A stretch of DNA of 64,000 bases from Styela clava. Lineage: Eukaryota. The position numbers were made by a program, and so were the translations under genes. Location: contig NC_135253.1 in assembly GCF_964204865.1 (NCBI RefSeq), positions 17,856,001 through 17,920,000 of the forward strand, in the 5' to 3' direction. The notes beneath the pieces were generated by a model, which had not been told where the DNA came from, did not search any database, and worked only from the letters and a program-made list of their open reading frames with translations. Each line of letters opens with the position of its first letter. Positions within the stretch are counted from its first letter, which is position 1. Shown one piece after another: positions 4,012 to 62,061 of this stretch.

Positions 4012-4473
<462 letters not shown>

Positions 4474-29065: not shown

Positions 29066-32000
29066 ATGCAAAGTATTGTCGCGTTGTTTTTGATTTACTG
29101 CGCTGGGGAAGCTTTAGCATTGAGGCGTGAATATTATATTGCAATGGAAGAAATAGTCTGGAGTTACAACGGTCCCGAATCCAGGTAACGATTAGGCTTG
29201 ATAGGCCGTTGCAATTATCAATAAAATAGAATCTCCTGATAATACACATCTAGCACCGAACCGTAATATGCTTGAGCGTCAAAATCCCGAGTAATCGATC
29301 AGAAATTGCGTTATTGAAGTAATTAATGCTGGACAAGACCTACGTACTTAGAAAATTGGTGTTTATTTAGTATATTAAGGAGAAAATATTTATTTTTGCT
29401 ACATTTGAATGAGTTTCAATCGCAGTAATTTGTTTACAAATTTTTCCGTTCATGAAATTTACTTCGAATTCTTCAGTCCATTCTTCAAGCGACCCGGGCC
29501 AACGAGGATTGGAGGAGACTTCAAAAAAGCAGTTTTTCGCCAATACACCGATTCAACATTCAGAACTCGAAGTCCGAGACCGAAGTCATTGGGATTATAT
29601 GGTCCTTTTATTAGAGCTGAGGTATGACTTTGATTTACAAGTGATTGGTTATAAAATACCTTTTCAATGTACAAAGAACGTCTTTGATTAAAACAATTTT
29701 TCTTTTGCGAAAAATGAATCGGCATCTTTATTTTAAGTTTTATTTCACTAGTAAGTTGTGCCCACACAACAATATAGCTGAAATTAGTATTTATATCCAG
29801 GTAAAAGACACAATAGTTGTTCACGCTTTTAACCGAGCCTCCCGACCATATAGCATTCATCCACATGGCGTTTTTTACAAGAAATCCAGTGAGGGAGCGT
29901 TGTACTCGGACAACACAACATCCTCAGATAAAGTCGATGACACGATTCCACCCGGAGGAAAACATAAATACATCTGGGAAGTTAGAGACGAGTATGTAAA
30001 GCTGAATTTATTGCTATAAATTAATATTAAAATCACTTTTACACTATAATATAGAAGGCAAGAAGAAGTTGATAGGACGTTATTTTGTGAGGGTGCATTT
30101 GTGGTAGTTAGGGACGATGGCATGGGTTGAATCGTTATGCTTGGCTATGTTGGAATCGAAGTTTCTACATCTTGACTTCAAATCCCATGTTCCCCATCTC
30201 ACCCAAAGTGTCGTAAAATACGTTTGAAGATTCCGGTTCGTCCAAATAAAAGCAGCTTCTTACACATCGTCATATATCTTGTGCTTGTTGTACATAGCTG
30301 TGTTTGGAGAGGAATGGGCGTGCCCATTTATGGCTAAAAATATTTAAAATTGCGATCTATATTCACTTAAATTTTATAGATATGCTCCCGGACCGGATGA
30401 TCCAAGCTGCCTCACTTGGGCTTATCATTCTCATGTTCACGCCTCAAGAGATCAGAATACTGGCTTAATCGGAACTCTACTCACATGCAAGAAAGGTATA
30501 ACCCATGTCGCGTGTAAAATCAAAAGTATGCCTAATTTTATCAAATCCGTCATGTTACTGTTATGATATAATGGGTTACTATGATATTTTACAATACCAT
30601 TTTTGAAAATTGAAACCTTTAACAAGCCCACCATTATGGCAAATTATTTTCTGGTGTCATTACATATTATTATATGTAGGCCAATACTTTTTCGATAAGC
30701 GTTGAAACTTAACTTCCGATATTGAAAATTGTCTGGTTCTTATTTTTGAGTTCCATAAACTAAATACCCAGATGGCAAATACCTCACAAAATTGATCACA
30801 AAAACCACAAATTACTTTTGTTTAAAACTATTGTCAAACTAATCCATATGATTTTTTAAATTTTGACTTTTTCAAATCTGAACTTGAAATCTGAATGTGT
30901 CTGTGATTAATTTGGTTAGGACAAAACCGAAACTCCTTTTTTTGCCATCAAATACTTCTTGGCTTGGATTGGCCATCGCCCCTACATAATTTTTTCTTAA
31001 TTTTTAAATTCTCATATTGCGTGGGGCGGGCGAGGCTGTAAATTAAATTGTATCTTGATTGACAGTGTTTACGCGACGGTTTCTATCAATTTGTTTATAT
31101 GAAATTACACTTTAGCCTTTAAGATATATATTGAATCAGAAAAGTATGATATATTTTTAACACAATTGATGCGAATATGGTTATTGAACAATTTGTTTTG
31201 TTATATTATGAATATAGTACATTACATGATACTTATATCAAAGATTACAAATTTAAATGTTAATGTTAGTAATTTATTCTTGTGGCGTGGTATTGTATCT
31301 CAAAGACAAATCTACGCTAAAATATACAGTTGATATAGACAAATATTTTTTACCCCAAATTGCTAGAGTTTCTTGAAAATTGCCCTCGTTCGTACAACAT
31401 TCAAATGGTCACATAGAGTTCAGGTTACATTTTAATCGACATTTAAATCTCGTTTAGCACTTACTCAAGTTCATGTTCATGTCAAATTATAACTAATTTT
31501 ATCTTACGCCCTCGGGTACGACTGTGCGACGGTCAAGTTTACTCTTTAAATAATCGTGACATTTCAACACACATTATCTCAGCTAAAAATCAATATTTCT
31601 AGACATTATGATTTTCAAAACATCTCATAATCAATTGTGTTACATATTTTACATGTCTACTATGTCCTATTTTATCCTTACAATGTCGAGCAATATAATA
31701 AAAAAAAAGTTAAAAATAGTTGTCTTGGAAAGTGGGAACACCTATTGATACTATAAAATATGATGATTTATCGTCCTCGTGAGATATTGGGCTATTTTGG
31801 ATACTTTTTACGCCTATTAAAAATAGTAGCATAAAACGAATATCATACACGATATATTCAAACTTGAGTTATTGAACACGAAATGTAAATATAGATCGTT
31901 ATATTATTATTATATTGTCGTTGTTGTTCTTCTTGTTGTTGGTATTTTTTGATCGCCTGCAATGGCTAGGACGATCTACAAGTGAAACTGACCGTTTTTC

Positions 32001-35000
32001 TTTAGTGCCAAATGACTTTGTTACGATCATTATGCAGTGATGATAATGATAATAAATTCAACAGTAAATGGTCCGTGAAAATTAGAAATTTACAGAAAAA
32101 AAGTACTTGACTTTAATAAATATTTTTAAGTCTGTATATTTGTTTTCAAATTCAGGAACATTGACATCCGCGGGACATCGTACTGATGTAGATCGTGAAT
32201 TTGCTGCCATTGTTTTTATTATTGACGAAAATGAAAGTTGGTACATTGACGAAAATATTAAGGCAAGAAGATAATTCAGTATTAATATGTTCAAATTATA
32301 AGTTTCATTCGAGCTTTACATGTTAATGCAATAAAACAGGAGGACTGCATCATACACATGTTTTATGAAGTTCATACATAACTTCAAAAATTTATATGCT
32401 TATGATCAAATAGACGAAGTATTACGACGAAGTTGTGTTTCCATTCAATTTTTATTTTTGTGCAAACAATCAAATCAATTTAGTTAATAACTGTTTTAGC
32501 TTCGCGTTCAAGGACCTTTACTAAGGATAATATTTAATTGTATTTTCTGAAGCCTGTTCTGAGAAGGTGATACCTAAACCTTTTTTCACGGAACCTATCA
32601 CATGAAAACATTGCCCAAACTTTTATCGTGATATTTCTAACCAATCTTTTTATTCGAATTTTCAGAATTACACTTTGCAACCAGATAGTGTGGATAAAAA
32701 AGATCCAGATTTTATTGAAAGCAATTTGTTCTATTCTGTGAATGGACATACTTTTCTAACACTTTCGACTGAAATGTGCAAGGGTGATTTGGTGCACTGG
32801 CATATTATTGGAATGGGATCAGATCTACATACAATGCAATTCACTGGGAATTCGGTAATATAATGTACTGCTTATAACTCTAATTATACGTTGCGCAACT
32901 GTTGCTGAATCCCACCTGTAGAGTCACATTGTAATACGTAACATAATATCAATTGAATACATGTATGATAATATTATATGATTACGAAGTCTTAGCAAGC
33001 TCAAGATTTCTACCTTTGGTGCCAATAATGTTTATTCAGATAGAGCTCTTTGACATACAAACTTAAACAAATAATGTCATGGCTTTTTGAGTGATTAAAG
33101 TTTATTGAGTTCCTCTGAGTATGGTCAAAAGCACTGACTCGATTGTGTAAGTGCAAGAAATATGATATCGCTAAATGTTATGGGTTTAACCGCGATTTGA
33201 ATATAAATTAAAATAGATGATACTTTATAATCTCCACGAAATTCGGATAGTTTGATTTGGTCTTGTATAGGAACAACGATATAACAAGATGATTGTTTTC
33301 GTTATGCTAATTCTGCCACATTTCGATAATTTTTGATTGCCGCAGACAGTCTATTTCAATAGAGAGAATGAAATTTCAGCGGCGTCGTTTCAAATGTTGG
33401 AAATTTTTTTCATCAGGTGATAATCAATGGACATCGCGAAGATACTGCGACTTTGTTCCCGGCAACATTTACGACAGCAATTATGAGACCCGATAATCCT
33501 GGCAAATGGCTTTTTGGATGTCACGTGTCACACCATGCTTCCGGCGGTAAGTTTTATTGGACACGTCAGTGGACATAACGATCGTTTCAATATTATGTTG
33601 TTGTTCTTATTCTTGTTCTTTGACACGTTATGAAAAAGTCGCTTTTCTCTCTGATTACTGGGCCAATTGCTTTGAAATTTTTAATGAATAAAGATTATAT
33701 TTTTCACTCGGAGGCTATTACTTTTTTTTTGCTATGACGCCATTAAAATTGGCCACTATGTGGCGCTACGTGTCTATATATTTGAGCATAGCTCTCTTGT
33801 TTCCACCAAGGCTTCTGTAATTGTTATATTCGTGAGAAGAATTACGTTTCTGCATATTTGCGACATCTCGAGTATATATTTAAATTTTATGGACATTCGG
33901 AATACACATCAGTTCAAGATATTTGTAGTTTATTTTAGCGGACATGCCAGGTATATGTCGAAAAAGTGTCAATACAGAGCAATTCTTTTCATTTTATATT
34001 CTTTGGTGTCCGATTCAAAAGGGTTTACAATTATTTTAGGAATGGTGATGGGATATAAAGTGCACGATAAGTGTGGACCTTCATTTGGAGCAGAATTTGG
34101 AAAAGGCTTAGGAAGTGTTGGCGACACCATTCGGACATATTATGTCGCAGCAGAAGAAGTGGAATGGAATTATGCACCAACTGGAATGAATATGTTCAGA
34201 CAAAAACCAATTGCAGAAGATGGACAGTAAGATACCAACTTGTAGTATAATCATAAAAATACCGCATTATCGTGTTAATCCTGGGTTATCTAACAAATTA
34301 CTTTTTGTTGAGGGATCGGGACTTTGAGTTCAAAAATTCTGAACTGACCCATACGTAGTTATGATCTAAAACCGCAGCAAAACCGATTTAAATTCTTTCA
34401 GGTACAGTCATGAATATTTTAGGAAAGGCCCAGATAGAATAGGAGGAATCTATATCAAGGCGGTTTATAAAGAATACACTGATGATACATTTCAAGTAGA
34501 AATGGAACGTGATCCTGTAATGGGAATCCTTGGTCCTGTTATTTATGCCGAAGTTGGGGAAACAATACATGTTGTATTTAAAAACAAGGCTAATCGGGTG
34601 AGAATGCCAACACATATTATGTTGTTTTATTAATTATATGAATTTTGAATTGAGTTTATCTGATCTGAATTTAGCTAAACGATTTACATGGTAACTTGGT
34701 AATCAATATTTTCAATCGTTTTGTACACAGGTCTATGAGATTGAACCACACGGGGTTTTCTTCAATAGCACAGTAAAAGTTGAACCAGGAAAGACTCACA
34801 CATACATATGGTAAGTATAATTATTTATAAATAATTTTTTTGTTGTATACGGAATTGTTGTTTTTAAAATGGAAAACCATTAAAGTAACTGTTCTATAGA
34901 GAACAAATTTAGTAACTTGAAGTTGCTGTAGGTCTGATACATTTTACTGATTCCCCCAGGCCTGTACCAGACAGAGTATCGCCACTCGAAAAAGATGACA

Positions 35001-38000
35001 ACTGTGTTACACATGCGTATGCGTCAATGGCCACTATCGATGTTGACCAACATACCGGATTGGTCGGCCCCATCGTGATTTGCAAAAGAGGTAAAGAAAA
35101 TTGATATCACAATTGTTGATATACTCATCGCAACTTATCGCAAATAGAATATTTCAGATTTATTATTTTATATTGTGGAGTGATTTTCTTCTTTTAATAG
35201 TCTTGATTTTCAATTATATAAAAATTCTTATTCTAAGGAAAATCGTAGATAATTTGATATATGATTTTTAGCATCGATATAAACTTTGGAAAACGCTGTT
35301 GAAATCGCATCTATTCACAACTGTCATTTATTTAAACAAAACAATTACACTTTAGTATTACCATAATTGTATGATGTTTATCATGTAATACTTCCCGCAT
35401 TCATTATTGGCAAGTTTTTTCAAAACTGCCCATTTAAATACATGTACATGCTATTCATTTTGAAGTGGTAACTGAAAGGCATATCCGTTTCATAGGAATT
35501 TTATCACATTACCAATCATTCTATTGTTTCGTGCGTTTTTTCTAGTTTATTATTAAAACCTGTTCTTTCTTTAAATGTGAATGATACCGTGACTGGTGTA
35601 GTTTATCATACCAAAAACAGTTTGGGATCAATATCCGTGAAATGCTATCACAGGTATGTTAGCAGACGAAATGAAGAAAACAGTATATTACATGTTGTTG
35701 GCAACGTTTGACGAAAACGAGAGCCCGTATCTACAACAAAATATTGATGCTTTCGCTGGAGATCCTTCATCGGTTGATAAAGATGATGAAGATTTCAAGG
35801 AATCAAATAGAATGAGATGTGAGTATTAAAAATAGATTACAAGTCAATTGCTGATTTGATACTAGACACCGTCGGTGTTGTAAGAATGATCTTGGTAACT
35901 TAACAAAGTAATTTATATTAAAGTCATAGCCATAGTCAACGTCGGCATAGTGCTCCGTTGTGGGAAGCGCATGTGGCACAACGTCATTTCATTACTTTAG
36001 TGAAATAGTCTTCAATGGAAATTGAAAAATGATGCTGTATCTTTTCAACGGAAATTAAAGAAAAAATGATAAATTATTGTGAAATTGGAAGATCTTCAGA
36101 ATTCCATGTTTTGTTTTATCAGCGATTAATGGTTTGACGTTTGGGAATATTCTTGGAGTGCAGTTGTGCACTGAACAGTATACCGATATTCGTTTATTTT
36201 CTATTGGTTCTGATCTGAATAACCATGCCTTCATATTGGACGGAGCTGCAATGAAAACTAGGTGATTTTATCTTAATTCGTATCTCAAATAAAAAAAACT
36301 TTTTGGAATTTTGGAATGAGTTTTTGTTCGTATAGAAATCGTCTCTAAAACGATAAATAGAAATGAAATATAACACAATGGGGTCTCCGTTTGAAGTTTG
36401 ATGATATCCGGTGACGCATACTTAGTATTTAGATATATGTATTTTGATTGGTTATGGAACAAGTTTCCCTTGTTTTGGTATCGTAGCTTTTGGATGGACT
36501 ATTTTTTTTATATATTCAAATCCATTCTTGTGTTTAAGAAATGAATACACGGGCATGGCTGGAGTATTCCCTCACGTAATCACAACGGTAAGTGTATACC
36601 CCTATGAACCTGGTGTAACGTTGTATGGATGTCACGTATCAAACCACGGAAAAGGAATGCTCGGTTTTTATGAGGTAACCTACATCCTACATACATTCCT
36701 AATTGTTGTTAGAATTCTTTTTCATTTTTGTTGTTTAGAAAGAGAGCTTTTCTCGTTATCTAGTAGACGAATTGCTTTGATTTTTCATTGATAAAAGATT
36801 GTAGAGTGTTGTTACTTTTACTTGTTTTGAAAAACTCTGTTGGCTCTATGGGATTTTTTTAGTTATTCTCTGTTTAAGATTGCAGATGATAGCTGAATAA
36901 ACATAAACATAGCCTAATATTACTACTACAACTGCTGCATAATGTGCATATGGATATAATCTCTGCTTGACAACTTCAGCCTCATTTCTTCGATTGTGCA
37001 GTGTGGTGCAAAGGGAAGCCAGAAAGATGGACACTCCAAATAAGCCTGTCCCTCCCAAGCGCAAAAGTCCCACCAATCGACCAATGCGTAATACTGCCAC
37101 GATGACCAACACAATTGAGGTTGATGATGTTAGTAACCTAGTGACTATCCTTGAAAGTACTGTTCTCAAAACCCTTCGTCTCGAAATTCCTGCCATCATC
37201 GAGCAACATCTTGAGAAATTTACTTTCGACACATCCCATGCCATAACCAACAATACCAGCGTTGATGAATCATTGTCATCTCTAAAAGAGTCGTTGAACG
37301 AGATTAAAAATGAAGTAACATCTTTCAGTGAAATCAAAAGAGAAATTCACGAAATCAAAAAAAGCCAAGATTTTGTGTCGAAAAAATTTGAAGAGCTTAA
37401 TTTCAACCAAAGCGAGCTCACAAAACTAGCTACGAAGACTCAAAAAAGAGTAAAAGTATTGGAACACCTTGTAGAAGAACTAGAAGAAGAAGTCGATATA
37501 TTAACAGAACGGCAGCAAGACCAAGAACGCCGTTCCAGACTGGATAATTTAGAATTTCATAATATTCCCTTTGCTGCTGGAGAAAACTGTGAACAGTTAA
37601 TATCAACGTTATGTAGCAAAATTGATGTCCCCTTACAATCCCTAGACGTCTCAAATTGCCACCGACTATCTAAAAACAACATTAAAAAACCATCTCCAAT
37701 AATAGCTAAATTTGTGAACAGAAAAACCAGAAATCGGATACTAACAAATCGTCGCAGACTGAAATCTCTGGACTTTTCGACTGTTTTTCCAAAACTTCCC
37801 AGAGCCACAAAAGTCTTTGTTGTTGAAAATCTTTCAGATACCAACAAAGATTTGTTCTTCAAAGCTAGAGAAAGGAAACATTCCTGTGGCTACAAATTTC
37901 TATGGACAAATAATGGCAAAGTCCTGATAAAAAAGAATGCTGACACATCCACCATCCCAATCCTTAATGAAGATGATCTGCTCTTAATAAAGTAGGTCAT

Positions 38001-41000
38001 TATTTACATATTTGCATTTCTGTAAGTTAGTTTTCCAACTTTTATGGCTTATTTTCATCCCCAAAAGTGTCAATGTTTGATTTGTGTGATAATGTAAAAG
38101 CTAAGGGTATTACCAGTTTGAAACATTGTAAAGAATTCAGTAATTGCCTGTGTAAAAACATTGAAGTATCCAATTTGAATGATATTCCGGTCGATTCTAA
38201 CTTAACTATTATCCATGTTAATATTCGCTCCATTCAAAAAAATATTGAACAACTAACATTACTGCTGTCCAATTTCTCTATTTCTCCACATATTATAGCC
38301 ATAAGTGAAACGAAATTGCATAAAAACCATCCTGCAAATGTAAGCATTGATGGGTATAGATTTATCCATGTCCCTTCTGCCTCTAAATCTGGCGGTGTAG
38401 GTGCATTCATCAGAAATGATATTATGTTCGCAGAATCCTCCGAAAATCAACTAAATTATTCTAACTGTGAAGATCTCTGGCTTGAAATTAGCTTGGCTAA
38501 CATAGGCATTAAATTGAACATTGGCATTATTTACAAACACCCTAAAAATGATATACCTGCTTTCACAAGCATCTTAGAAAACCGCCTTGCGAAATTAGCT
38601 AGGGAGCATTTTATAATAGTTGGTGACTTTAATATCAATTTACTTGCAACATCGAGTAGTTCTCAAATCACCAACTATTCTAATATGCTTATTGCTCATA
38701 ACTCTACCTCACTTATTACGAAACCGACCAGGGTTACACAAACATCATCCACCCTCATTGATCACATCTATTCCAATGTGACGCATTATAATTTAAATTC
38801 TTATGTTATAACATCTGACATTACAGATCATTTCCCTATCATGTGCTGTTTCAGTGGGGCCAAACCATCTGTTAGAAATGATCTCATAATAACAAGGGAT
38901 ATGTCTGCTTTTTCCATCCAAGATTTTCATTCAGACACTCTAAGCTTGATAAATGATTGTTTTCATGCACTTTATTTGACTTCCCAAAATTTTGACAGAA
39001 AATTTGAAGAATTCACACAATCTTTTATAAGTTTAATCAATCATCATGCCCCTTTGAGACCACTATCACGTCGTAAAAAAATAGTAAAACTCAAACCTTG
39101 GATAACGAAAGGCTTGCTTAAAAGTATTCACCTGAAAAATAAGTTGTTCAAGTCGCATTTTCTTAAAGGCAACAGTATACAATGCTCTTACTTTAAAAAG
39201 TATCGTAACATACTGACACATGCTATTGATAATTCAAAACAATTACACTATCAAAATCTTATTGCCCAAAACAAAGGGAATCCCAAATCTACGTGGCGAA
39301 TTATTAATCAAATTGCAAACACTAAAAATAATGCAAAGCAAAAAATCGATGTAATTCATCTGGAAAATGGCACTATTATCAATGATAATCATCAGATTGC
39401 TCTAGAATTCAATAAGTATTTTTCCACTGTTGGATCCAACCTTGCAGATAAGTTCTGTAATGACATGGATGGCTTTAAAAAGTATCTTGGTAAACAAGTT
39501 AACCAATCCATATTCTTAAGTCCAGCGACGGTGAACGAATTAACAATAGAACTTGCAACCCTAAAGGAGGGGAAGGCGGTGGGAGCTGACAGCATTCCCA
39601 GTCGTTTTCTCAAGTATGTTGCTGATATAATAGCGCCATGTCTGACAGACTTCTTTAATAGCTCGCTTCGATTCGGAATTTTTCCATCCTCGTTGAAAAT
39701 CGCCAGAGTGATTCCAATCTTTAAATCTGGCAATACAAAACAAATATCAAATTATAGACCTATTTCGATACTATCCGCTATTGACAAAGTATTCGAGCGC
39801 CTAATCAATAGAAGGTTAATGAACTTTTTTACAAAGCACAATGTAATAAATAAATCACAGTTCGGTTTTCAAAGCAATCATTCTACTTCACATGCGATTC
39901 TAGATACAATATCTCATATCTACGAAAAATTAGAGAAGAAGGAATATGTCAGTGCAACATTTTTAGATCTCAAGAAAGCTTTTGATACCGTCAATCATCA
40001 AATTTTAATATACAAGCTGTGGCATTATGGAATTAGAGGAGTACCAAACCAACTCCTGGCTAATTACTTAACCAATAGAACGCAATATGTTCAAATAGGC
40101 TCACATTGTTCCCCTTCTTTGCCTGTGACCCACGGGGTCCCCCAGGGGTCTTGTTTGGGCCCGACTCTTTTTTTAATCTACATCAATGACCTTGCTCACA
40201 GCTCAACATTATTCTCAAAATTGTTCGCTGATGATACCAACCTTCTAGATAGTGACAAGTCCCCCGGTGTTCTTCAGTCCAGAGTGAACACTGAAATTAG
40301 GAAAGTTGCGAATTGGATGAAACTCAATAAATTAACTTTGAATGTAGACAAATCAAAAACTATGCTATTAGCTCCCCACAAATCCAAGCCAAAGACAGCT
40401 TTAAAAATTAAGATTGAAAGTACTATTCTTGAAAATGTTAGCTCATATAAATATCTCGGCATTCACATTGACAACAAAATGCAGTGGAACATTCAAATAA
40501 CAAACACTGCTGTTAAATTATCTAGGGCGGTAGGAATGCTATATCGGCTTAGATCTTATACTTCAATGTCTACTTTACGCATGGTATATCACGCCTTGTT
40601 TCAGTCTTATTTGCAGTATGGTATTATAGCTTGGGGTTCCGCTAACAAAACCTTGTTAAATCGCATCGTAATTATACAAAATAGAGCTATCCGTGCCATT
40701 ACTTATGCTGGTCCAAGGTCGAGACTAGACCCCCTGTACCATAAAATGCGAATAATCAAAATGGCTGATATTTATAAAATTGAGGTTTTAAAACTGATGC
40801 ACCAACATCATAATAATAAACTTCCATCGGCTTTTACTGACTATTTTGTTAAACAAATGAGCGTCCACACCTATGCAACTCGTTCAGCTGCCAATAGTTC
40901 TTACTATGTGCCTCGCTATGCTACCAATCGTTCGCAAAGCACTATCAAATACATGGGTGTAAAACTATGGAACACGCTTACTGATTCGATTCGTTTGAAA

Positions 41001-45202: not shown

Positions 45203-45613
45203 TATGTATCATGTTGCTGATAATTATCATTTCAATAACAGTGCATGCTACTGTTAGTTTATGTGTAAATATGGGGTATTTGCAGCTATTGATTTCTTTC
45301 CGCTTTTTTATTAATAATCTACAATGCATTTTGTGTTTTTATTATTTTATACGCATGTCTGCCAAATTTCAATTGTGCCGATATGTTTTAAAATTCGGGT
45401 ATAAATCAAATAATTCAGGGATCTCAATTTAGTTGCAGTAAAAATGTAATGGTTATATATAATAAATTGAAAAACACATCATCGCTTATTACTGCTATCT
45501 AGCCAACTAACGAACTGAATTTCTATGTTCAAGAAGATCAAAAAGTAACTCAGAAATAATTTAATGGGACATATACATATTTGCCAGCTTTTTTTACAAT
45601 AAAGATTTAGTTA

Positions 45614-49921: not shown

Positions 49922-49949
49922 GCTAGAATGAGTTTAAATATATTTTATT
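49922..49949 (-). promoter_or_regulatory. Candidate intercistronic junction: poly(A) signal of copy C followed by a splice acceptor and ATG of the next gene
   Basis: Minus strand reads AATAAA (49949-49944), 19 nt, AG (49924-49923), c, ATG (49921). Confidence 0.45.
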
Positions 49950-50035
49950 TTTGAATGTATATTTCACCAGAAAATATGTGGATAACATGATAACAGCACA
50001 AAGTTTTATGTTAATTAATTACAATAATTGCACTT

Positions 50036-53000
50036 TTACATAGATTTTAGAATCCCTTCAAATTTATCACTAGCGACACAGAATTTCATCGTGCGCCAGT
50101 CTACGTGGAGGTCATTCAGACATCTGGGGGTGAGATCGTTGTTCCCGCGCAAATCTAATCTTTTCAATCGTCTACCTCGTCCTACAAGCACATTTGGTGA
50201 TACCGATTTTAATTTGTTATGTCTGAGATCCAACACTTCAATAGATCCTGTAGGGCGGCCATAACGTGGTAAGTATTGTATATGATTGTTCTGAAGATGC
50301 ACTACTTTCAGAAGTTTATTTCCATCGAAGAGATCACCCGGTAGGTTCATCATGTTTACGTTGTTGAGCCAAAGAGTATGAAGTAATGGAAATTTCGATA
50401 AAGTCTTTTTCAATATTTCAACGTTACCGAGAGCCGGGTTGTGACTCAAGTCTAACTGAGTAATACTGGATGCGGGTACAAAAATAACGCCTTCTTTTAA
50501 TTGAACTTTCACTTGATACTTGTTGTTCAATAAATGCATTCTTTCGCCAATGCCGAGCAGAGAGCAATCGATATGCGTATTGGAAGTACATATATATGAA
50601 ACGCATATCGGCTTGCAAAGAGCTGTGAAATATATTAAACTTTGATTATGGCGGGGTTTCTATGATAAAATAGGAGTATTACAGCACCCCGACATCTGTA
50701 TAGTAATTCCTTTCATTATAGTAAATGGATATATGCAAACAAAATGAATAGTTTTGCAAGTTACCTGTCTGGTCGTGAACAGTGTATGTTGTAACCATTC
50801 CAATATCTACGTGAGTATTAACATGGCAATGTAGAAGCCATTCACCAACAGCATCCGGTCGCATTAAGAGTGTAGAATGCCGCCCAGTATATAAATCAAA
50901 CACATCTCCTTTGTTTTCGGAACTGGATCTAATGATGATTAACATTGAATGATAGGAAGACGTGCATACCAGACTGTTTTATTTACGCTATCCAAAGACA
51001 TGAGATTTCAATAAACTAACACAAGCATACAGATTATAATAAAAAATGAAATGAGTACAAAAGTAAACTCACTGGTGTACAAACGCGTTAGCGTGGAAAT
51101 GAACCGCATGAATGTCTTCTTCTCCTTCTGCAAACAAATGCCATCTTACTAGTTCCCCTCTCTCCATATTCAATTCGGGAACATGATAGAGGAATCCATT
51201 GATATCTACATATGCATAGAAATGGTTTTTCTTTAATTGCTAATTCACAGATACGTGATCATATGTTATGTGGAAATAGGTAGGTATACTAATTAAAAAC
51301 ATTAAAATATTTTGCATCGTTTTTAAATTCCGTAAAAATATATCTGAATATCTGATAGAAATGAATTTTCAACGTTAGAAAATCTCAAACAAATGTGTTC
51401 AATGTTCAAACAAATAAGTTCTTATAGAAATGATTAGACAATAAATGTGTGATAATTGTGGTACAGTCTTTACAGTAATATAGTACAGTCGTTTACTTAC
51501 GATTCATTCTGTTACTTTCCACAAAAGATTTATCTTTTTTATTAAATGTTTCTGGATCAGCTTTTGCAAATTCACGAATATTCTCATCAATATAATGACT
51601 CAAATTTTCATCAGTAATGTAAAATAATAAAGAGAACTCTTTGTCTGCCATTCCTCCTTTCCTTTCGTTTAATGTCCCTGCAATACGATTTGAACTGTGT
51701 TTCTGAATCGTTACATATATATATATGTGTGGCAAAAGTTAAATTTATCCATAAAAATAGGATCTTACCTCGCCTACATATGACCATGGGTCCTCTAGCT
51801 CCACTGTAGGCATCTCTTCTGAAATCAGCGTTAGAGTAATAGGCACTGGCGAAACAATCAGGTTGATCCGGATTCGGAGCAAACTCCGGTCTTACCTGTG
51901 TTGGATTGAATATTGTTGAAGGATGCAATGCATAAAATAAATGTAAACGCAAACTCCAGTCAAGAATCTCAGGCATATTTGCGAATGCTAATTAGCCTTT
52001 ATAATATACAAAAATATATTTGAGTTAACACAATAAAATTATGCAAAACAAAAAGGTTGCTTTACGATTGTATTATAAATTCACACTTAAACTTCATTTT
52101 TTAGATTTTGAAAGCAACTCAAAGTAAGCTATATTCAAGCACGATGATGATCTGCACGATTGTTATAGATTTTCTACGTTTACCATAAATTTATACCTGC
52201 CAAGTGTAGGTCACGGTTTTTCCTGGTTCGGCGGTTGGTACGGGACCTTGCATAATTCCGACGTAATACACGCCGATTGGTAGCACATTGAACTTAATCG
52301 TTGCCATATTTTTGAAAACAACCTTTGAACAACACACCGTGTTATTGTTTTTTCGATAAAAAGCTGTCGATTTATCAAACTATATATAAAAATAGGCAAA
52401 TGTGATATAAAATGTTATCAAATGATTCACCTTCACTTCGTCACCGATTTCCATTTTTAAAATGGGTCCGTCGAATCCAAGATGCTTTGGCTTTGGTTTT
52501 CGAACAGTGAAGGAGTCATCGATATATTCATAAAATATAGCTTTTTTATACCTTGTTCCTGAATATATCATTATTTTACATGAATTTTTGTTAGTAATGA
52601 GAAGATAAGATATTATATTAGAAGTAAAATAAATACCAAAGACACGTGCAAGCGGTTAATAATGTTTTATTAAGCATACATAAGTGTCCCAAATGATCCA
52701 TCGTTATTGCACAAAAACAAAATATAGTCAACTTAGATTTTTTTAGCAAAGATTTAAATTTAATTTAACCTATGTATTTTCCATTCTCCTGGTGAACATA
52801 TAAATAAGCGAGATGTTCTGGATCATCAACAGAATTTCCTTTATGATCGAATCTACGAGAAAGATAATCCCAAACTTCTTCAACAACGCCGAGATAAATT
52901 GTTCGTTTACCAGAAGGCTGGAATTCTGGCTTTGGGTCACGGCAGTATTTTGACTTGATGAAAATAGAAATATTTGTAAATAGTTTTGTTCTGAGAGGTT

Positions 53001-56000
53001 ATGGTCGTGAAATTGGAGCAAAACTTGGCCATCTGCCATTTTTCCTTTTTTTCGTTCAATGTACCTGCAATACGATTTGAACGGTGTCTCTGCATTGTTA
53101 TATATATGTAGGCTTACCATACGTCCCGCTTTAGGCGGGACAGTCCCGCTTTTCAGCGTTTTGTCCTGCCGTCCCGATAAGTCAGCCAAAAGTCCCGCTT
53201 TTTCAGCATAATACACAAACATGTTCTCGTTACTGTTGTTTCTGTGTAGCGCAGCGCTAGCCTACTTACTGAAGGTTGATGCGTTCGTTTTCCCGCTGAT
53301 TCCCATTGATGACAGGCGTATCGCATGTAAAACCAATACTAATTAGTCTAAATTCGAATTATTTGTACCGGTATCGTTAACGTCAATTCCTTCCTATTTT
53401 TCGAACTAAACCCGATATTTGGACAGAGAATATGCGCATGAAATTTCTATAACAATATGGTCAATAAAGACAGCCGAGGCAGCTTTAAATGTAGAAATGT
53501 AGGCCTATGTAGTAAAATCGGAAAATGTGAAGTTATAAAATCACAGCTAAGGGGTCGTTGTCTTTCGAGGCGTCCCGATTTGAAGTCACAAAAATTGGGA
53601 ACCCTATATAAGCTAAAAAGAAACGGGACTGACGTCACAGATTGCGCAACACGATTAACCATCGGTAATCAACACTTATGCAGTGTGGCGTAATATGTGT
53701 TCTTTGTTTAACAGCTGTTTTGACACAATATCGCAATTATTTTTGCTTTTCAGGATCCATAAGTGAATGTGATAAATTTCTTGTTGGAAAAAATGCTGTG
53801 CGAGGTCTGATTGAGTTTTTTGGCGATAGGGGGTTCAATTAAAGAATGACGACTGAGCAAAGAATTAACATTAAATTTTGCATGTGCATTCATCATAGCT
53901 CGGATCAGAAGACTATTTTGGATGGATTATGTCTTATAATTAGCGAGTTATTAATTAATTAGCGATGTGACACACGGTGTCACTGTGGAGTAAGACCACT
54001 GTTTTGGGGGATCCCCTAACCTTCGATCAATAAGTCTTCGGTTTCTAACCGATATTCTAGTTTTGATTTTACTCGAAATGTCTCTCTGATATCTCCGATA
54101 AACATTTCGGTTAAAATCTTATGACTTTAGTGGAGATACAAACGTGGCAATAAATGTACGCAATAGAAGTAGGAGTCAACCAAAAGTTTTTGCTCACATT
54201 TTTGAAATTATAATTCTGGCTGCGTGTGCAGCTGCCAGAATGCAACGTTTCTGCGAAGTTTCGCGGCGATGCAGGGGGTATTTCAAATAAAAAATATAAA
54301 AAATACAGAAAAATTTGATTTGAAACATGCCCTTGTTTTAAAACATGATGTTTTTTTTAGAATTGATAAAAAACAAAACTCTTCTCCTATTTACCTCATA
54401 AAAAGAGATCATCCCATTGGTTCCATGGTTTGATACGTGACATCCATACACTGATACACCAGGCGCAAATGGGTATACACTCGTCGTGCTGATAACATGG
54501 GGGAAAACTCCAGTCATGCCAGTGTACTCGGTTCTTAAGAAAAAGCAACAAGTACTTCAACATTTAAACGTGAAACAAACAAAATTGAAAATCTTTCTAC
54601 CATTATAAAGTTTTTAAATTATAATTTTAGCCACATAGAAATACCGCATAAAAAATTATTCAAAAAATAAAGCTTTTCAGTCTTCGCTCAATGAACATTT
54701 TGACGATAGGAAACAAAAAACTTCATTCAAATATCAAATCAAACGTTATGTGTATTCAAAAATGTCAGGATTTCAACCACGCCTTGTCAGTCAATGTTTT
54801 CGTTTTTAGAATTAACAGCATAATATCGGAAAGGAAGATTTTCTTCCATATGCTTAGTCTCAAGTTATTACAAAATTTGTAATCACCTCGTTTTCCTTGC
54901 AGTTCCGTCTAATATGAAGGCATGATTATTCAGTTCAGAACCCAGAGATAATAAACGAACGTCGGTATATTGTTCAGCGCACAACTGCACGCCAAGTAGA
55001 TTTGCGAACGCCAACCCATTAATTGCTGATAAAAGATATTGAAAAGATAAGGAAAAACTTCCAATTTTAGAGGAACTGTAAAGTAAATTTATTTTTTTGA
55101 ATTAAAAAACAAACAGTATAATTTAATACTTAAAGATTCGTCAACTATTTCACAAGTGTGACTATGTGGGATATTTAACAATGTTCATTTCACGTTCTTT
55201 CATGTCGCCAAGTAGTGGTTCTATGACAAATAGTCTAGTTCGTTGGACACGAAATGTATATATGGATCGTTTTGTTATGATGTCGTTGTTGTTCTTGTTC
55301 ATGTTCAATTTTTTTATCAATTCTTGGCTTGTTATGAAATAAATTTCTCTTCAATTACTGGGCCAATTGCTTCCAAATTTTCCATGGTTAAAAATTCCCT
55401 TTTTTTGGTAGAAGGCTATTTAATATTTATTATCAGATAATTATTTGATATTTTATTAATACAGCTATTATTTTTCATTTATTTCAACAATTTATGTCGG
55501 TTCCATGTAGTTCGTTTTTCATGCAATGACGTGATCAAAATTACGTACTTTGCGGCGGTATTCTACTGTAATAGACAGCATGCCTTTACTACTTCATTTT
55601 GACCCTTATGTCCATCTATTTGAGCATCGCTCTCTTATTCCTAATTAATAAACACAGATCTTTAATAAGCTACCATTTGAATCTTCTTTTACACTCTTTA
55701 CTTTGCTATTGTTATCATGCCCTAAAAATAAATGTTTTTCAACTCACATTGCATTCTATTTGATTCCTTGAAATCTTCATCATCTTTATCAATCGACGAA
55801 GGATCTCCGGCAAATTTATCAATACTTTGTTGAAGATACGGACTTTCGTTTTCGTCATACGTTGCCAACAACATGTAGTAAACTGTTTTCTTCATTTCAT
55901 CTGCTTTCATTTCATTTCTAAACTGCCGATTGTAATTTAGATTTGAATATTTCCTAGGAAATAGTTAAATTGGGGAACTAAATAAAAATCTTCAATGCAT

Positions 56001-59000
56001 TTTCCTATAATCAATCACTAGTCGTTAAATATTTCTTATGGAGTATTTAATTCATCGGAAATTTTTTCGTTTTATTAATTAAACGATTGTATAAAGCGTG
56101 ATAATAATTTGATAGTTTAATCTAAATCTTTAATCCTAATCTAAAGCGTGATAATAATTGACATTTTTTTACCTCTTTTGCAAATCACGATGGGGCCAAC
56201 CAGTCCGGTATGTTGGTCAAGATTGATACTGGCTAATGACGTATACATATGTGTAATACAGTTGTCATCTTTTTCGAGAGGAGAAACTCTGTCTGGTACA
56301 GGCCTGAAGTTATTAATAAATTCATTACAGCAACATTTTCTTTATGAAGATAAATGCTTATTTTGGATCACAACATTTAGTTAATCAATTTTTTCCGTTT
56401 ACTCTTAAATGTTTTATAGTGACCCCATGTTGATATCCAGACCACCATAGCATGGTATTGCGCTTCTAGTTAAATTTATTGAGGTGTTGCTGAAGTTTAA
56501 TTTTTTACGTAATTAATGGTAAAGTAAGTTACCTGCTTCAACCAACAGTTGTTTAATATTTGTTCAATATGTATTTTGTTCGCTTACCACACATAAGTGT
56601 AATTCTCTCCCGGCTTTACTGTCTGTTTTCTAAATGAGAAGACTCCATGAGGATCCATCTCATAGGTCTGTGTAATATATATATATATAACAAGAGACCA
56701 ATGCCTAAATATATGGACACGAAAAGCAAAACGAATCAAATTTTTCACAACAACGGTATTCTGATTACGAGATCACTGAGATGTAAGCAAGAAACCTCGA
56801 CATGCGATGCATAATTTTGATGACTTCATCACACAAAACTTTGAAGTGAAAAAGAATCCTATAGAGACCACAAATATATTTCGTGTCCAATATTATCTAG
56901 GATATAACTACTTTCTGGCATGCCATTACTAGAGTTTAATACCATCACGATTTAAACCTATGTTTGAACGGGATACAATATTTCGTGACATTGCTCTAGT
57001 AGGCCAAGAATTATTACTAGGTTGGTACATCTGGATACTGGAGTTAAATCAACAAAGATTTACTTTGATAAAACACGGAATCTGAGTATCCGAATCTTGG
57101 ACGAATCATGCTCTTCTGCGGCCCTAAGCATGCAAGATTTTGGTGCCCTATATGTGCCTTTCAAAATATTAACATCATAAAGCACACACAATATTATTCA
57201 TCAAAACTAAACAGTGAGAAAAATATTATTAATAATGTTTAAGTTTATTACTAATTGAGGGCCCAGGTATGATTAGTTTACATGATTTTTTGGAAATAGT
57301 TCTCATACATACAGACATTCATACAGAAGTTTAAGATGATACTTGAAAAGGGAAATTAGGCAATAAGTTTAAACGGGCCGATATTGAAGTCTGAGTCTTT
57401 TGACCAACTAGAATCATTTCATTAAACACTGAAACACAATTGCAAATTTGGCTTAGAAATTTACTGTGGTGCCAGCACTGATTCGAATCCTCACCCGATT
57501 AGCTTTGTTCTTAAATACAACATTTATTGTTTCTCCAACTTCGGCATAAATAACAGGACCAAGAATTCCCATTACAGGATCACTTTCCACCTCTACTTGA
57601 AATGTATCATCAGTGTATTCTTTATAAACCGCCTTGATATAGATTCCTCCTATTCTATCTGGACCTTTTTTGAAATATTCATGACTTTCCCTTAAACAAA
57701 TTTGAATTGTGTACATTAGTGTAGAGTACAAACATAATAGAAAGTGTCAAAGCAAAGCACTGTTTAAGAGTAGTTATTGTGACTTTAAACATTATGTTTG
57801 AATTCTAATACTCTGAAAAATTAATAAAAAAACACAATATGTTATTTGTTTTTATTCGCATTGAATAAATCAAGTTTTTTCGTGGATTTTAGGCCCATCC
57901 ATAGTCACCCTTCACACGAACCCTCTCATACATATTGCAAGAGCAAATAATAATTGTATCTTACTGTCCCTCTTCTGCAATCGGTTTTTGTGTTAATATG
58001 TTCATTCCAGTTGGTGCATAATTCCATTCCACTTCTTCTGCTGCAACATAATATGTTCGTATGGTGTCGCCTACACTTTCTAAACCTTTCCCGAATTCTG
58101 CCCCCAGCGTTGGTTTACAGGTATCATGCACAGTGTAAAACATTGCCATTCCTGGAATAAACCAAAACAATCTGTCAAATTAAATAATTACTTCTTGATA
58201 CATGTGTTTAAAAATATACCAAAAAGCACTAAATACCTTTGATTTGAAGCGTAGGGAAGTTTGTCGACGATTTTAGTGTTAAAGTAGTATTTTGATGATT
58301 AAAAATGTCGAAAAGTTCAAGATCGGAGCTATCGGCAAAAATTTACTTTAAAAACTCCTTCCAACAACTAACTGGTGGGTTGGAAGGAAGGATAAATTTA
58401 GTTACCTCCAGCCACATGGTTTGTCACTTGACATCCGAAAATCCATCTTCCTGGATTGTCAGCTCTCATAATTACAGTTGCGAATGTTGCCGGAAACAGA
58501 GCCACAGCGTCTCCGCGATGTCCATTAATAATTCCCTGGTGAAATTTTTAATTTGTGACATTTTAGTATAAACTTGAGAAGCAACAAAATAATAGTAAAT
58601 TGCTTTTCAATATGTTTTTTTACATCGATATATTTCACAGGCAATTCATATACATGACAAATAATATTAAGAATGCTTCAAATTTTATCCAGTTTGAGCA
58701 GTGAAATCTGTAACATTTGATTGTGCTTTGAATTTACGCTAGTAAGCGTTGTGACATTTCATTACTTTTTCACTCTCACGACCGAGCCATAATCTGCTAA
58801 CTAGGAAATGGGAATGCAAAATAAAATCAGCTGGGGTTGCAAGTAACCAACTATCTTTCTCTGCTCTATCACTTTGCGCCAGTGGATCAGGATGCGTATA
58901 TTGCAAGAATGGTGTAGCAAGAATAAAGATAACTTTTCTATTTGATTAAAGAGTCTTGCTTACTAAAACAAATATATTCATGGTTGACATAAGATTGTCT

Positions 59001-62000
59001 GAAGAAGTCTGACCTCGGCAAAATATAACGCCACCGGGCAGCAAGACTCTTGAATAAAATAACAAGATAATATATTACGGAATTTCCAGTAAATTGCATC
59101 CCATGCATTTCTGAACCCATTCCAATGGTATACCAGTTCACCAAATCCCCTTTGCACATTTCAGCCGATAGACTTAAAAAGATTAATCCATTCATAGCGT
59201 GAAATACATTGCTTTCAATGAAATCTGGATCTTTTTTATCTACAGTTTCTGGCTGCAGAGTGTAGGTCTAAATAATTGAAAATATTGAATTGAAGTTCAG
59301 GTTTTTATGTATCTGATAGTTTTTTGAATTGTCACTTTTAGGCCGCCTTGCGTACAAGACAGTCTACAAACACGCCAGTAATTTCCACATTAAGTACAAC
59401 AATATACGAATGGAACATTGGTTTCTATGGTTAATAATAATAATAAACATATGGAATGGATTTCGTGTTACAGCTTTCCAGTGCCGCTAAACCGGTATAA
59501 TGGTTTTGAGGAGTTAAACCTATCCTAGTAAAATGTGATAAAAGTAATTTAAACATTATTAGTGAGCCGCCTTCTTGCCTTAATATTTTCGTCAATGTAC
59601 CAACTTTCAGTTTCGTCAATGACGAAGACAATAATTGCAAATTCACGATCTACATCAGTACGATGTCCAGTGGATGTCAATGTTCCTGAATTGAATGAAA
59701 AACTATTTTCGCTTGGAAACCATTGTATCGCAATCCTTGTCGCAATTTCATGAAGCTATTAATTCACAAGTGGCATAATATTCTTCGAAATCAATTTCAG
59801 CATGAGTGTAATATAATTAAAATATATTTATTCGGTACGTATCGTTTGAACCGACTTGCATTGATGCTATCTACTTTTACTATGTTTTACATGGTACCCT
59901 TATCCTGTAATCGGTTGCTTACTGTAAATGTCTCAATTATAACAATATGGGCGAATTGATGGTAATGGACGAATTGATGGACTGAGTTGAACGCTTGTGA
60001 ACACCGAAGTGTTATATCGATATCAAAGTAAGTACCAAGGCTTTGTGTGGCATTTCTTTGAAATCAGAAGCAGTTTTTGATAATTTTTTTACAAATACCA
60101 AAGCGTATATATCTCTATGAATATTTATGTTTTCCGTCTAGTTGTCTGTGGGGGTAATTTATGCCTTGCACTGAATTCAAACGTTGCAAATCGTTTATTT
60201 CACAGTCATTGCATTGTTTGTAAAACTTCAAATTATTCGTGCACGATTTTAATGCCTCTAGGTAGGGCTCAATAAACAATATGCCTGGTACTAACGATTT
60301 TTGTCGTGATAAACATGTCAAGAGTTCACGATTATTGAACTAATAAATAAATACATTAGTTGCGCTGTTCTACCCGAAGGCGAAATATGAATTTAATTAC
60401 AAAATGACACGGAATTTACATTTTTAAAGTGTTAAATAATATTTAAAAGTCGATTTCAATGCCACATCGAGTCAACTCTGAAGAGCTATCTAACTGTATT
60501 ATATATCTCTTCCTATAACAAATTTCCATTTGATTCGTTTTAATCGACATAAACCGGACTCGGCATTTACTGCTTCTGTTCACAAAGCCTTCAAGATTAT
60601 TCGCCAAAGAGTTTAAAATACTTAGCATAGACTGGTTTATAATTAATTTTGAACATTATTCACAAATTTCCATTTTCTTGTTAAATAGGTGATTTAGAAC
60701 ACAAAGACAATACCCGGTTTTAAAAATTTTGTCGATTCATTGTGCCATTTAAATATATAAGATATTATGAAGTCCACACAAACCAGATCCTCATATAAAA
60801 GTTTCACTTGGGAAGGGTCCTATTAAGCTTTGATAAGATACCTTCTTTGCACGTGAGGAGAGTTCCGATTAAGCCAGTGTGTTGGTCTCGTGACGAGTGA
60901 ACATGAGAATGATAAGCCCACGTTAAGCAGTTTGGATCCTCTTTTCCTGGGGCATATCTGCAAAGTGAGTAAATGATATAAAGTAATTAATTTTTTTGTG
61001 AAAAGATTAGGAAATCTTGCGCAGAATGAAATAACAATTAATTAATCGATAGTCGGTCGACGCGGAGAATAAATGAAAACTATTCTTAGATACATACTCG
61101 TCTCTAACTTCCCAGATATATTTATGTTTTCCTCCGGGTGGAATTGTGTCATCGACTTTATCTGAAGATGTTGTTTTGTCTGAGTACAACGCTCCCTCAC
61201 TGGATTTCTCGTAAAAAACGCCATGTGGATGAATACTATATGGTCGGGTGGCACGGTTGAAAGCATAAACAACGATCGTGTCTTTCACCTCGATATAAAT
61301 ACTAATTTCAAACCTAAATTCTGAAGAATAGTTAAATTTGGTATTACTCCCAACAACAAAACAGTGTCATACCTCAGCTCTAATAATAGGACCAAACAAT
61401 CCCAATGACTCCGGTCTCGGACTTCGAGTGCTGAAGGTTGAATCGGTGTATTGACGAAAAACTGCTTTTCTATATTCTCCTCCTATCCTGGCCGGTCCAC
61501 GACGCCTAAAAAATCGGCTGCAAGAAAATTTTAGATTCATATCAATGTATTGTGAAAGGTTGTTGAAGATTGATTAAAGATTTCAGATTTAGATTTGAGG
61601 CGGTACATTTTTCAATCTCGTAAAAACTGTATTGGATATATGCAGAATGGTGTTATGTCTAAACGAACTTTTGCTCATTCGAATATTTTATTTCCTGTGT
61701 TATTTATAGATTTTCTGAACACAATACAGTTTATTATTTTTTCGCTAATTTCATAAAAATAATTTCGGCAGATTACCTGAAAAAGACATTACTGCATTTC
61801 TCAAATATGTAATGGATTCGGGTAAAATATCGCTTTTTATAGTCATCTCGTGAAAATTATAATTTTACATTACTAGCATGTGTATCGGATTAATATCTCT
61901 AATGCTCTGATCCTCAATTAATTCAATTAACTCAAATCATACCTGCTCTCAGGACCGTTGTAATTCCAAACTATTTCTTCCATTGCAATGAAATACTCGC

Positions 62001-62061
62001 GTCTCATTGCCACTATCTCCCCAGCGCAAAATATAGAAACCAAAACAACGATATAGTACAT
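50036..62061 (-). CDS. MCO copy C: inverted paralogue of copy B, MCO plus LRR (~1219 aa, 22 exons)
   Basis: Exons 62061-61943, 61517-61373, 61288-61098, 60957-60842, 59685-59579 (GC donor), 59267-59079, 58535-58406, 58151-57965, 57690-57495, 56667-56588, 56303-56173, ~55912-55748 (acceptor irregular), 55025-54887, 54533-54395, 52953-52770, 52558-52431, 52322-52197, 51895-51769, 51677-51501, 51205-51073, 50928-50765, 50622-50036. Sizes equal those of copy B except exon 14 (+3) and exon 22 (-3). All Cu motifs present ([25 protein letters not shown]). Confidence 0.88.
53030..53108 (-). repeat. Displaced duplicate of the intron 18/exon 19 junction of copy C, inside intron 14
   Basis: ctgccatt...ttcgttcaatgtacctgcaatacgatttgaacggtgt matches 51645-51720 (acceptor plus [12 protein letters not shown]). 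Confidence 0.75.
53109..53615. mobile_element. hAT (Tip100-like) MITE
   Basis: Ends TAGGCTTACCATA ... ATTGGGAACCCTA; multiple subterminal GTCCCG repeats; TSD degraded. Confidence 0.6.
55243..55639 (+). mobile_element. HINE-like element, copy 3
   Basis: TTGGACACG start, GTT microsatellite, same core, ends gtccatctatttgagcatcgctctcttatt. Confidence 0.6.
56689..56891 (-). mobile_element. HINE-like element variant (same ends, different interior)
   Basis: aacaagagaccaatgcctaaatatatggacacg ... cgtgtccaat. Confidence 0.5.

Follow-up and report, generated by a model that had tools for sequence, protein, structure and literature searches.

A leucine-rich-repeat exon as the predicted in-phase continuation of two ceruloplasmin-type copper oxidase genes in Styela clava

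The well-studied members of the six-domain copper protein family are positioned by what is added after domain 6, that is, a glycosylphosphatidylinositol (GPI) anchor in ceruloplasmin, a transmembrane helix in hephaestin and discoidin domains in factors V and VIII. In the two latter proteins the discoidin domains C1–C2 serve membrane binding, which is the precedent for a C-terminal binding module carried by a chassis of A domains, and vertebrate ceruloplasmin is known to use alternative 3′ exons giving secreted and GPI-linked isoforms. Here, we describe two genes, hereafter P1 and P2, found in 64,000 nucleotides of Styela clava DNA (positions 17856001–17920000 of contig NC_135253.1, below C4, in an assembly of 377 Mb; this whole stretch is called the window, and positions without a contig name are counted from its first letter), in which a complete set of oxidase exons is followed by one more exon encoding leucine-rich repeats (LRRs). 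A conserved LRR module at this place would be a fourth, protein-directed solution to the problem of positioning. Our preferred reading, held with a probability of roughly 0.65, is that P1 and P2 are functional secreted six-domain copper oxidases in which the LRR extension after domain 6 acts as an address tag; what was found is a domain fusion in predicted genes. A survey of six-domain copper proteins published in 2013 contains two Ciona proteins of 1670 and 1434 amino acids, far longer than ceruloplasmin, and does not discuss extra domains in them (PMC3600357). No description of an oxidase–LRR fusion was found in the literature, in agreement with an earlier note on this DNA, made from the letters alone, whose author knew of no characterised six-domain copper oxidase with LRRs.

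With a G+C content of about 34%, the window is AT-rich animal DNA, and its six-frame translation reveals a complete set of ceruloplasmin-like exon pieces which starts at 29066 on the plus strand and is mirrored on the minus strand from 62061. These pieces were assembled into two convergent genes of 22 exons each (Table 1), both with a coding length of 3651 nt (1216 codons and a stop) and with a predicted precursor of 1216 residues composed of a signal peptide, six ceruloplasmin-type cupredoxin domains and the product of the LRR exon. Splice sites of P1 were picked by frame compatibility and consensus, and for the donor of exon 4 the analogous sites of domains 3 and 5 led to 30495, a choice which P2 confirms; the resulting model is stop-free and phase-consistent, having AG and GT at all junctions apart from one GC donor. 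Every P1 exon maps end to end onto P2 with AG and GT (or GC) at the matching places, the translations of single P2 exons contain no stops and all split codons are sense, so that 22 of 22 exons correspond one-to-one and 21 of 21 introns occupy identical positions. Exons were searched singly throughout and never joined; lengths of the whole genes are sums, and so are the distances, which were added up exon by exon. Even the rare GC donor of intron 5 (AAG/gcaaga, at 32263 and 59578) recurs in P1, P2 and two of the three other close copies in the genome, P3 and P5, the mapping having failed for P4.

The last oxidase exon of P1 ends with ...CAG ACA G/gtaaaa at 44483 and the LRR exon begins after ttttgcag/CT at 44613; P2 mirrors this arrangement with its donor at 50765 and acceptor at 50622. 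Direct reading of the letters bore out all four coordinates, which had been proposed in the earlier note. In both genes this phase-1 intron splits a GCT codon (G+CT, Ala). Beyond it the frame stays open for 195 codons in P1, up to TGA at 45200–45202, and for 194 codons in P2, up to the stop at 50036–50038; the two stops take the same aligned position, as had been claimed, and the encoded sequences share 77% of amino acids with one codon missing in P2. An open frame arising by chance is excluded, because 196 open codons have a probability of about 4e-6 at the stop-codon frequency of the window, because the other two frames carry 12–19 stops and because the frame is open in both copies. The LRR exon has neither a start codon nor a signal peptide of its own, and its six conserved cysteines are typical of a secreted cap. 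Since the preceding intron measures only 129–142 nt, there is no room for another first exon in front of it, and since the oxidase frame runs into the donor without meeting a stop, it must continue in another coding exon. AATAAA signals follow the stops at about 90 nt in P2 and 260 nt in P1. No hydrophobic transmembrane or GPI-like tail was found in the LRR exons, their maximal Kyte–Doolittle mean over 19 residues (KD19) being 0.9 and the mean hydropathy of the last 25 residues about −0.1 to −0.2, against a KD19 of 3.09 in the transmembrane tail of a distant copy (L009) taken as control; the previously noticed lack of a membrane signal is therefore real.

The LRR exons of P1 and P2 have 79% nucleotide identity with a synonymous divergence (dS) of 0.79, a non-synonymous divergence (dN) of 0.14 and their ratio (omega) of 0.18, which falls to 0.13 in the repeat core and rises to 0.57 in the N-terminal cap. 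The last introns are 58% identical, and the 3′ flanks, at about 51%, are essentially unalignable. Thus, the LRR exon is under purifying selection, and the intron preceding it and the 3′ flank have decayed. On account of gene structure, purifying selection and the lack of an own start codon or signal peptide, the analysed letters support the view that the LRR exon continues the coding sequence of a complete six-domain copper oxidase in phase and is conserved as such, and we infer that it is spliced onto the oxidase mRNA in vivo.

The oxidase part comprises 21 exons with about 1020 residues, its N-terminus in P1 and P2 being a typical hydrophobic signal peptide. Six cupredoxin domains form three tandem two-domain units whose exons match each other, for example exon 2 versus exons 9 and 16 at 47–52% identity. 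Pfam models were searched exon by exon, several short exons remaining without a match. Among proteins of solved structure, exon 21 is closest to rat and human ceruloplasmin (Protein Data Bank (PDB) search, E 7e-21 to 1e-17) and aligns to their last ~45 residues, factor VIII being next (E 1e-9) and laccases far behind. As this exon corresponds to the C-terminal end of ceruloplasmin, homology to the latter stops where exon 21 stops, and the LRR part is a pure add-on. Both genes carry the motifs HPH (exon 3), HSH (exon 4), HFH (exon 20) and HCH (exon 21), which we take to be ligands of the trinuclear cluster from their position by comparison with the human enzyme. The type-1 copper motif C-x4-H-x4-M following an upstream His is present in exons 7/8, 14 and 21 (domains 2, 4 and 6) of both genes with the exception of domain 4 of P1, where the loop between the type-1 His and Met has lost 3 nt, a deletion found in P1 alone among the five close paralogues, which brings the Met one residue closer, so that copper binding in this domain may differ. 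Between HCH and the next His, rat ceruloplasmin, P3, P4 and the two distant copies (L008 and L009) have Asp, and P1, P2 and P5 have Thr. This Asp beside the domain-6 type-1 His serves Fe(II) binding in human ceruloplasmin, and with Thr in its place a non-iron substrate is possible.

As to the added module, both terminal exons exceed the gathering cut-offs of Pfam LRR_8, LRR_4, LRR_6 and LRR_1, and each copy contains four strict and one relaxed match to LxxLxLxxN. The cap-like N-terminal stretch with IDCS, the five repeat units and the two-Cys tail that had been noticed earlier are present in both exons; all six cysteines are kept, four of them spaced as Cx3Cx4Cx7C in the N-cap and two close to the C-terminus. 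Sequence matches of the exon in PDB are LRRTM, IGFALS, LRRC15 and LGR4 at E 1e-13 to 1e-11, as well as chondroadherin, LRRC32, Nogo receptor and FLRT, and the alignment with a hagfish variable lymphocyte receptor starts at residue 2 and so runs through the N-cap. Structure prediction, suggested beforehand as a check, was carried out with AlphaFold2 (AF2) on an alignment of 16 sequences, namely the two paralogues and 14 generic LRR proteins, a model from the two sequences alone being unusable with a predicted local distance difference test score (pLDDT) of 38. The core, residues 50–165, was predicted as an LRR solenoid with pLDDT of about 80–92, both ends staying below 50. All 22 Foldseek matches against PDB at E <1e-3 are LRR proteins, and the closest fold is that of the Nogo receptor, 31% identical over about 130 aligned columns. 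A dibasic motif RRLKR is kept in LRR 5 of both paralogues (about 45056–45070 and 50171–50185); lying in the predicted beta-strand of the fifth repeat, it is probably structural and not a processing site.

A whole-genome search with the last oxidase exon detected five close copies, P1–P5, and two distant ones, L008 and L009. Of the LRR exon the genome has two copies only, those of P1 and P2, the next LRR matches being 28–35% identical. These were considered as the possible donor of the exon and rejected, as their E values were 6e-5 or worse and none of them included the caps. P3–P5 agree with P1 and P2 in exon structure and share with them the phase-1 donor G/gtaa after ...QDQT. In P3, P4 and P5 the LRR exon was not found within the roughly 10–14 kb examined beyond their last oxidase exons; four small conserved blocks are present there, which form a splice phase chain 1, 0, 2, 0 ending in a stop and amount to about 126 residues with several cysteines, including a conserved CECQTIWC stretch and a CKCEC end. 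The three genes thus appear to continue into a different Cys-containing tail. The largest of the blocks has no Pfam match, and its omega is about 1, yet it is open in four copies, which makes the alternative tail a tentative model. In P3 the tail block of roughly 2 kb is present in two tandem copies. Counterparts of these blocks were not found in the window at E <1. The distant copies end in still other ways. In L009 (C8:4.82 Mb) domain 6 passes directly into a transmembrane helix and a short cytoplasmic tail, as in hephaestin, with a match to a Pfam transmembrane/cytoplasmic-tail model, and L008 (C8:7.26 Mb) has a phase-1 donor at the position used in P1–P5 and a possible terminal exon of 24 residues, so it probably bears a short tail. 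Such a change of the tail at one common phase-1 intron among otherwise similar paralogues would look like exon shuffling of an address module. One more relative lies 3 kb upstream of P1 at 23535–25999 on the plus strand. It is a partial extra copy of oxidase exons 1–3 with open frames and good splice sites and no later exons behind it, in which exon 1 is 98% identical to that of P3 and exon 3 99.5% identical to that of P4, marking it as a very recent fragment of P3/P4 type; it may be dead, or it may serve P1 as an alternative 5′ cassette.

Synonymous divergence of the oxidase body, summed over 13 exons, is 0.42–0.48 between P1 and each other close copy and 0.16–0.22 among P2–P5. Judged by dS of 0.79, the LRR exons date back at least to the deepest split between the paralogues. 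Synonymous differences between P1 and the others are distributed as a mosaic, being about 0.11–0.27 in exons 9, 11, 15 and 21 and about 0.5–0.7 in exons 1, 6, 7, 16 and 17, which points to gene conversion and suggests converted patches among the five genes. Quartet sums leave their tree unresolved, and in view of this and of the mosaic exons no claim is made on the ancestral tail. Either the LRR tail was ancestral to all five genes and was replaced in P3–P5, or the oxidase body of P2 was homogenised with those of P3–P5.

Taken together, these data would fit the following scheme. One secreted oxidase chassis with the full set of copper ligands has a phase-1 intron directly after domain 6; the terminal exon would append to it a small disulfide-capped five-repeat LRR of the extracellular Nogo receptor, variable lymphocyte receptor and LRRTM type; and this LRR would serve as a protein-binding address tag holding the soluble oxidase at an extracellular partner such as a matrix, tunic or cell-surface protein. 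The tag might then be the counterpart of the GPI anchor of ceruloplasmin, the transmembrane helix of hephaestin and the discoidin domains of factors V and VIII, and it is by these devices attached to the same fold, together with the diversity of tails observed here, that a role in localisation is suggested. The earlier proposal of an exon-shuffled targeting domain accordingly stands in one of its parts, favoured by the conserved in-phase continuation and by the tail differing at a common phase-1 intron; targeting to a ligand, its other part, is argued by analogy, and the roles put forward with it (extracellular cross-linking, adhesion, a wound or immune response, or metal handling) are conjectural. 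A bolder extension of the scheme, doubtful as a whole, would hold that sea squirts use one oxidase chassis with swappable tags (LRR, a fast-evolving Cys tail, a transmembrane helix or a short tail) at an old phase-1 intron, and that the LRR-tagged forms with Thr might be matrix-tethered phenol or catechol oxidases, not iron oxidases, which harden or repair the leathery tunic or act upon wounding or in immunity, so that they would be the chordate equivalent of the laccase of insect cuticle.

Several points weigh against the address-tag reading. Pfam LRRNT and LRRCT had no match on the LRR exons at E up to 1, so that the caps are recognised by their pattern only, and these same regions have pLDDT below 50 and, in the N-cap, an omega of 0.57. 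None of the 11 sequencing runs sharing words with the window is on record as RNA, and the word share of 0.71 in runs guessed to be RNA fails to separate RNA from DNA. A binding partner and a localising role of the LRR are suggested by analogy only. No public protein joining an oxidase and LRRs was found at the searched lengths. Homologues of the LRR tail retrieved with HMMER from 1.84 billion representatives were generic multi-LRR giants only, at no more than 36% identity, and oxidase sequence was present in 0 of the best 150 matches, representatives chosen at 50% identity being able to hide an LRR-tagged protein; a word-indexed search of proteins of 107–341 amino acids, a length window that excludes full-length products, gave no match. 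The architecture may already be present, unremarked, in automatic annotations.

How these genes end admits other explanations, one of which places the LRR exon outside the oxidase mRNA, as a separate gene or an untranscribed relic lying downstream. We regard it as very improbable: 195 codons have stayed open in both copies through dS of 0.79 with omega of 0.18, the exon lacks a start and a signal peptide of its own, phase-matched splice sites are conserved 129–142 nt past the oxidase donor, and the oxidase frame needs a further coding exon. Somewhat more likely, though still rather improbable, is that the genes have several alternative 3′ ends, the LRR exon providing one of them and, for example, intron retention or an undetected terminal exon the others, so that plain secreted and LRR-tagged isoforms would coexist. 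The intron after domain 6 is exactly the place where the tails of the paralogues differ, and ceruloplasmin offers an example of such 3′ exons; however, read-through of the donor gives short tails which are not conserved between P1 and P2, the window contains at E <1 no counterpart of the tail exons of the other paralogues, and strong purifying selection indicates that the LRR form matters.

Equally unlikely in our estimate, although in agreement with a real fusion, is that the LRR works as a recognition or regulatory domain which senses a microbial or damage ligand and couples it to local oxidative chemistry, as in melanisation or tanning, recruits a substrate protein, or mediates oligomerisation. 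TLR8 and the variable lymphocyte receptors of lamprey and hagfish are among the structural neighbours, and the Thr that P1 and P2 have for Asp at the Fe(II) site fits a non-iron substrate, but a resemblance to such receptors is generic to LRR folds, and five repeats in only two copies with omega of 0.13 are unlike a diversifying recognition family. Under the address-tag reading, one genome with five near-identical paralogues that differ in their tails would represent a natural experiment on the re-addressing of an enzyme by swapping of its terminal exon, and the LRR used as bait would offer a handle on what a ceruloplasmin-like oxidase of a non-vertebrate acts on.

Some further features of the window are recorded here beside the gene models. 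Intron 14 of P1 (36675–42404) harbours an apparently intact non-LTR retrotransposon at 36943–41060 (+), in the same orientation as the gene, with open reading frames (ORFs) of 350 (ORF1) and 1010 (ORF2) amino acids and with endonuclease and reverse-transcriptase Pfam domains; its presence accounts for the length of this intron, 5.7 kb versus 1.4 kb in P2. Translations of short ORFs at 33688–33817 (+), in intron 7 of P1, and at 47005–47202 (−), in the spacer between P1 and P2, contain a similar string of residues, which suggests a small interspersed repeat. Upstream, a single-exon ORF at 4030–4473 (+) resembles, by eye, mitochondrial acyl carrier protein, and two exon-sized ORFs at 9974–10246 and 12680–12988 (+) with a TOPRIM-like DGDREGE motif suggest, likewise by eye, a topoisomerase III-type gene.

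Table 1. Positions of P1 and P2, their exons and last introns, and the other close copies with their candidate tails. Positions are those of the window unless a contig (C) or locus (L) is named.
Feature	Position	Strand	Remarks
P1 whole coding span	29066..45202	+	22 exons, phase-consistent model
P1 exon 1: start codon, signal peptide, start of domain 1	29066..29184	+	KD12 maximum 2.27
P1 exon 2, domain 1	29477..29621	+	gene model
P1 exon 3, domain 1, HPH of putative trinuclear cluster	29801..29991	+	Pfam Cu-oxidase_3, 23.3 bits, cut-off 21
P1 exon 4, domain 1, HSH motif	30380..30495	+	gene model, P2 match
P1 exon 5, domain 2, then GC-AG intron	32156..32262	+	donor AAG/gcaaga
P1 exon 6, domain 2	32666..32854	+	gene model
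P1 exon 7, domain 2 type-1 copper Cys/His	33417..33546	+	gene model
P1 exon 8, end of domain 2 and start of domain 3	34040..34226	+	gene model
P1 exon 9, domain 3	34402..34597	+	gene model
P1 exon 10, domain 3	34731..34810	+	gene model
P1 exon 11, domain 3	34960..35090	+	gene model
P1 exon 12, domain 4	35663..35818	+	gene model
P1 exon 13, domain 4	36123..36261	+	gene model
P1 exon 14, domain 4 type-1 site	36539..36674	+	3 nt shorter than in other four paralogues
P1 exon 15, domain 5	42405..42588	+	gene model
P1 exon 16, domain 5	42855..42982	+	gene model
P1 exon 17, domain 5	43077..43202	+	gene model
P1 exon 18, domain 5	43529..43655	+	gene model
P1 exon 19, domain 6	43735..43911	+	gene model
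P1 exon 20, domain 6, HxxHxH	44050..44182	+	weak Pfam Cu-oxidase_2, 17.6 bits, below cut-off
P1 exon 21, last oxidase exon (HCH..H....M), phase-1 donor	44320..44483	+	Pfam Cu-oxidase_2, 40.9 bits
P1 last intron, 129 nt, phase 1	44484..44612	+	gtaaaa...ttttgcag
P1 exon 22: four-Cys N-cap, five LRRs, two-Cys tail, stop	44613..45202	+	Pfam LRR_4 44 bits, LRR_8 36.6 bits
P2 whole coding span	50036..62061	-	22 exons
P2 exon 1, signal peptide	61943..62061	-	mapped from P1
P2 exon 2	61373..61517	-	mapped from P1
P2 exon 3	61098..61288	-	mapped from P1
P2 exon 4	60842..60957	-	mapped from P1
P2 exon 5, GC donor	59579..59685	-	mapped from P1
P2 exon 6	59079..59267	-	mapped from P1
P2 exon 7	58406..58535	-	mapped from P1
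P2 exon 8	57965..58151	-	mapped from P1
P2 exon 9	57495..57690	-	mapped from P1
P2 exon 10	56588..56667	-	mapped from P1
P2 exon 11	56173..56303	-	mapped from P1
P2 exon 12	55748..55903	-	mapped from P1
P2 exon 13	54887..55025	-	mapped from P1
P2 exon 14	54395..54533	-	mapped from P1
P2 exon 15	52770..52953	-	mapped from P1
P2 exon 16	52431..52558	-	mapped from P1
P2 exon 17	52197..52322	-	mapped from P1
P2 exon 18	51769..51895	-	mapped from P1
P2 exon 19	51501..51677	-	mapped from P1
P2 exon 20	51073..51205	-	mapped from P1
P2 exon 21, last oxidase exon, phase-1 donor	50765..50928	-	mapped from P1
P2 last intron, 142 nt, phase 1	50623..50764	-	sequence read
P2 exon 22: N-cap, five LRRs, two-Cys tail, stop	50036..50622	-	Pfam LRR_8 42.9 bits, LRR_4 34.3 bits
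P1, P2	this window	+ / -	close copies with LRR exon
P3	C4:17.93 Mb	-	close copy
P4	C4:18.00 Mb	+	close copy
P5	C8:22.74 Mb	-	close copy
Candidate alternative tail blocks	L016:372-1663, L018, L011, L012		downstream of P4, P5, P3

Compared with the systems described so far, P1 and P2 share with ceruloplasmin the six cupredoxin domains in three repeated pairs, the signal peptide, the type-1 copper motifs of domains 2, 4 and 6 and, for the trinuclear cluster, the HxH/HCH ligands of domains 1 and 6. They depart from it in having Thr for the Asp beside the domain-6 type-1 His and in that ceruloplasmin ends a few residues past domain 6 or with a GPI signal, whereas P1 and P2 add about 195 LRR residues. 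Hephaestin and zyklopen (HEPHL1) also combine the six-domain chassis with a C-terminal localisation device after domain 6; theirs is a transmembrane helix, whereas the tail of P1 and P2 has no hydrophobic segment and is predicted to be a soluble protein-binding fold. Factors V and VIII are built on the same cupredoxin chassis of A domains, factor VIII being the next-best solved relative of exon 21, but they no longer act as oxidases and bear discoidin domains and a B domain, whereas P1 and P2 retain all copper ligands and carry LRRs. On the side of the added module, the Nogo receptor, the LRR part of LGI1, variable lymphocyte receptors, LRRTM and chondroadherin have the same 24–25-residue LxxLxLxxN repeats in a curved solenoid, and such capped extracellular modules possess a Cys-rich N-cap and a Cys-containing C-terminal end, as the pattern of cysteines suggests for P1 and P2. 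The LRR of P1 and P2 differs from them in its five repeats only, in the cap pattern Cx3Cx4Cx7C and in two instead of four C-cap cysteines, and, where the known capped modules are joined to a membrane anchor or to an immunoglobulin or EPTP domain, in being joined to an enzyme.

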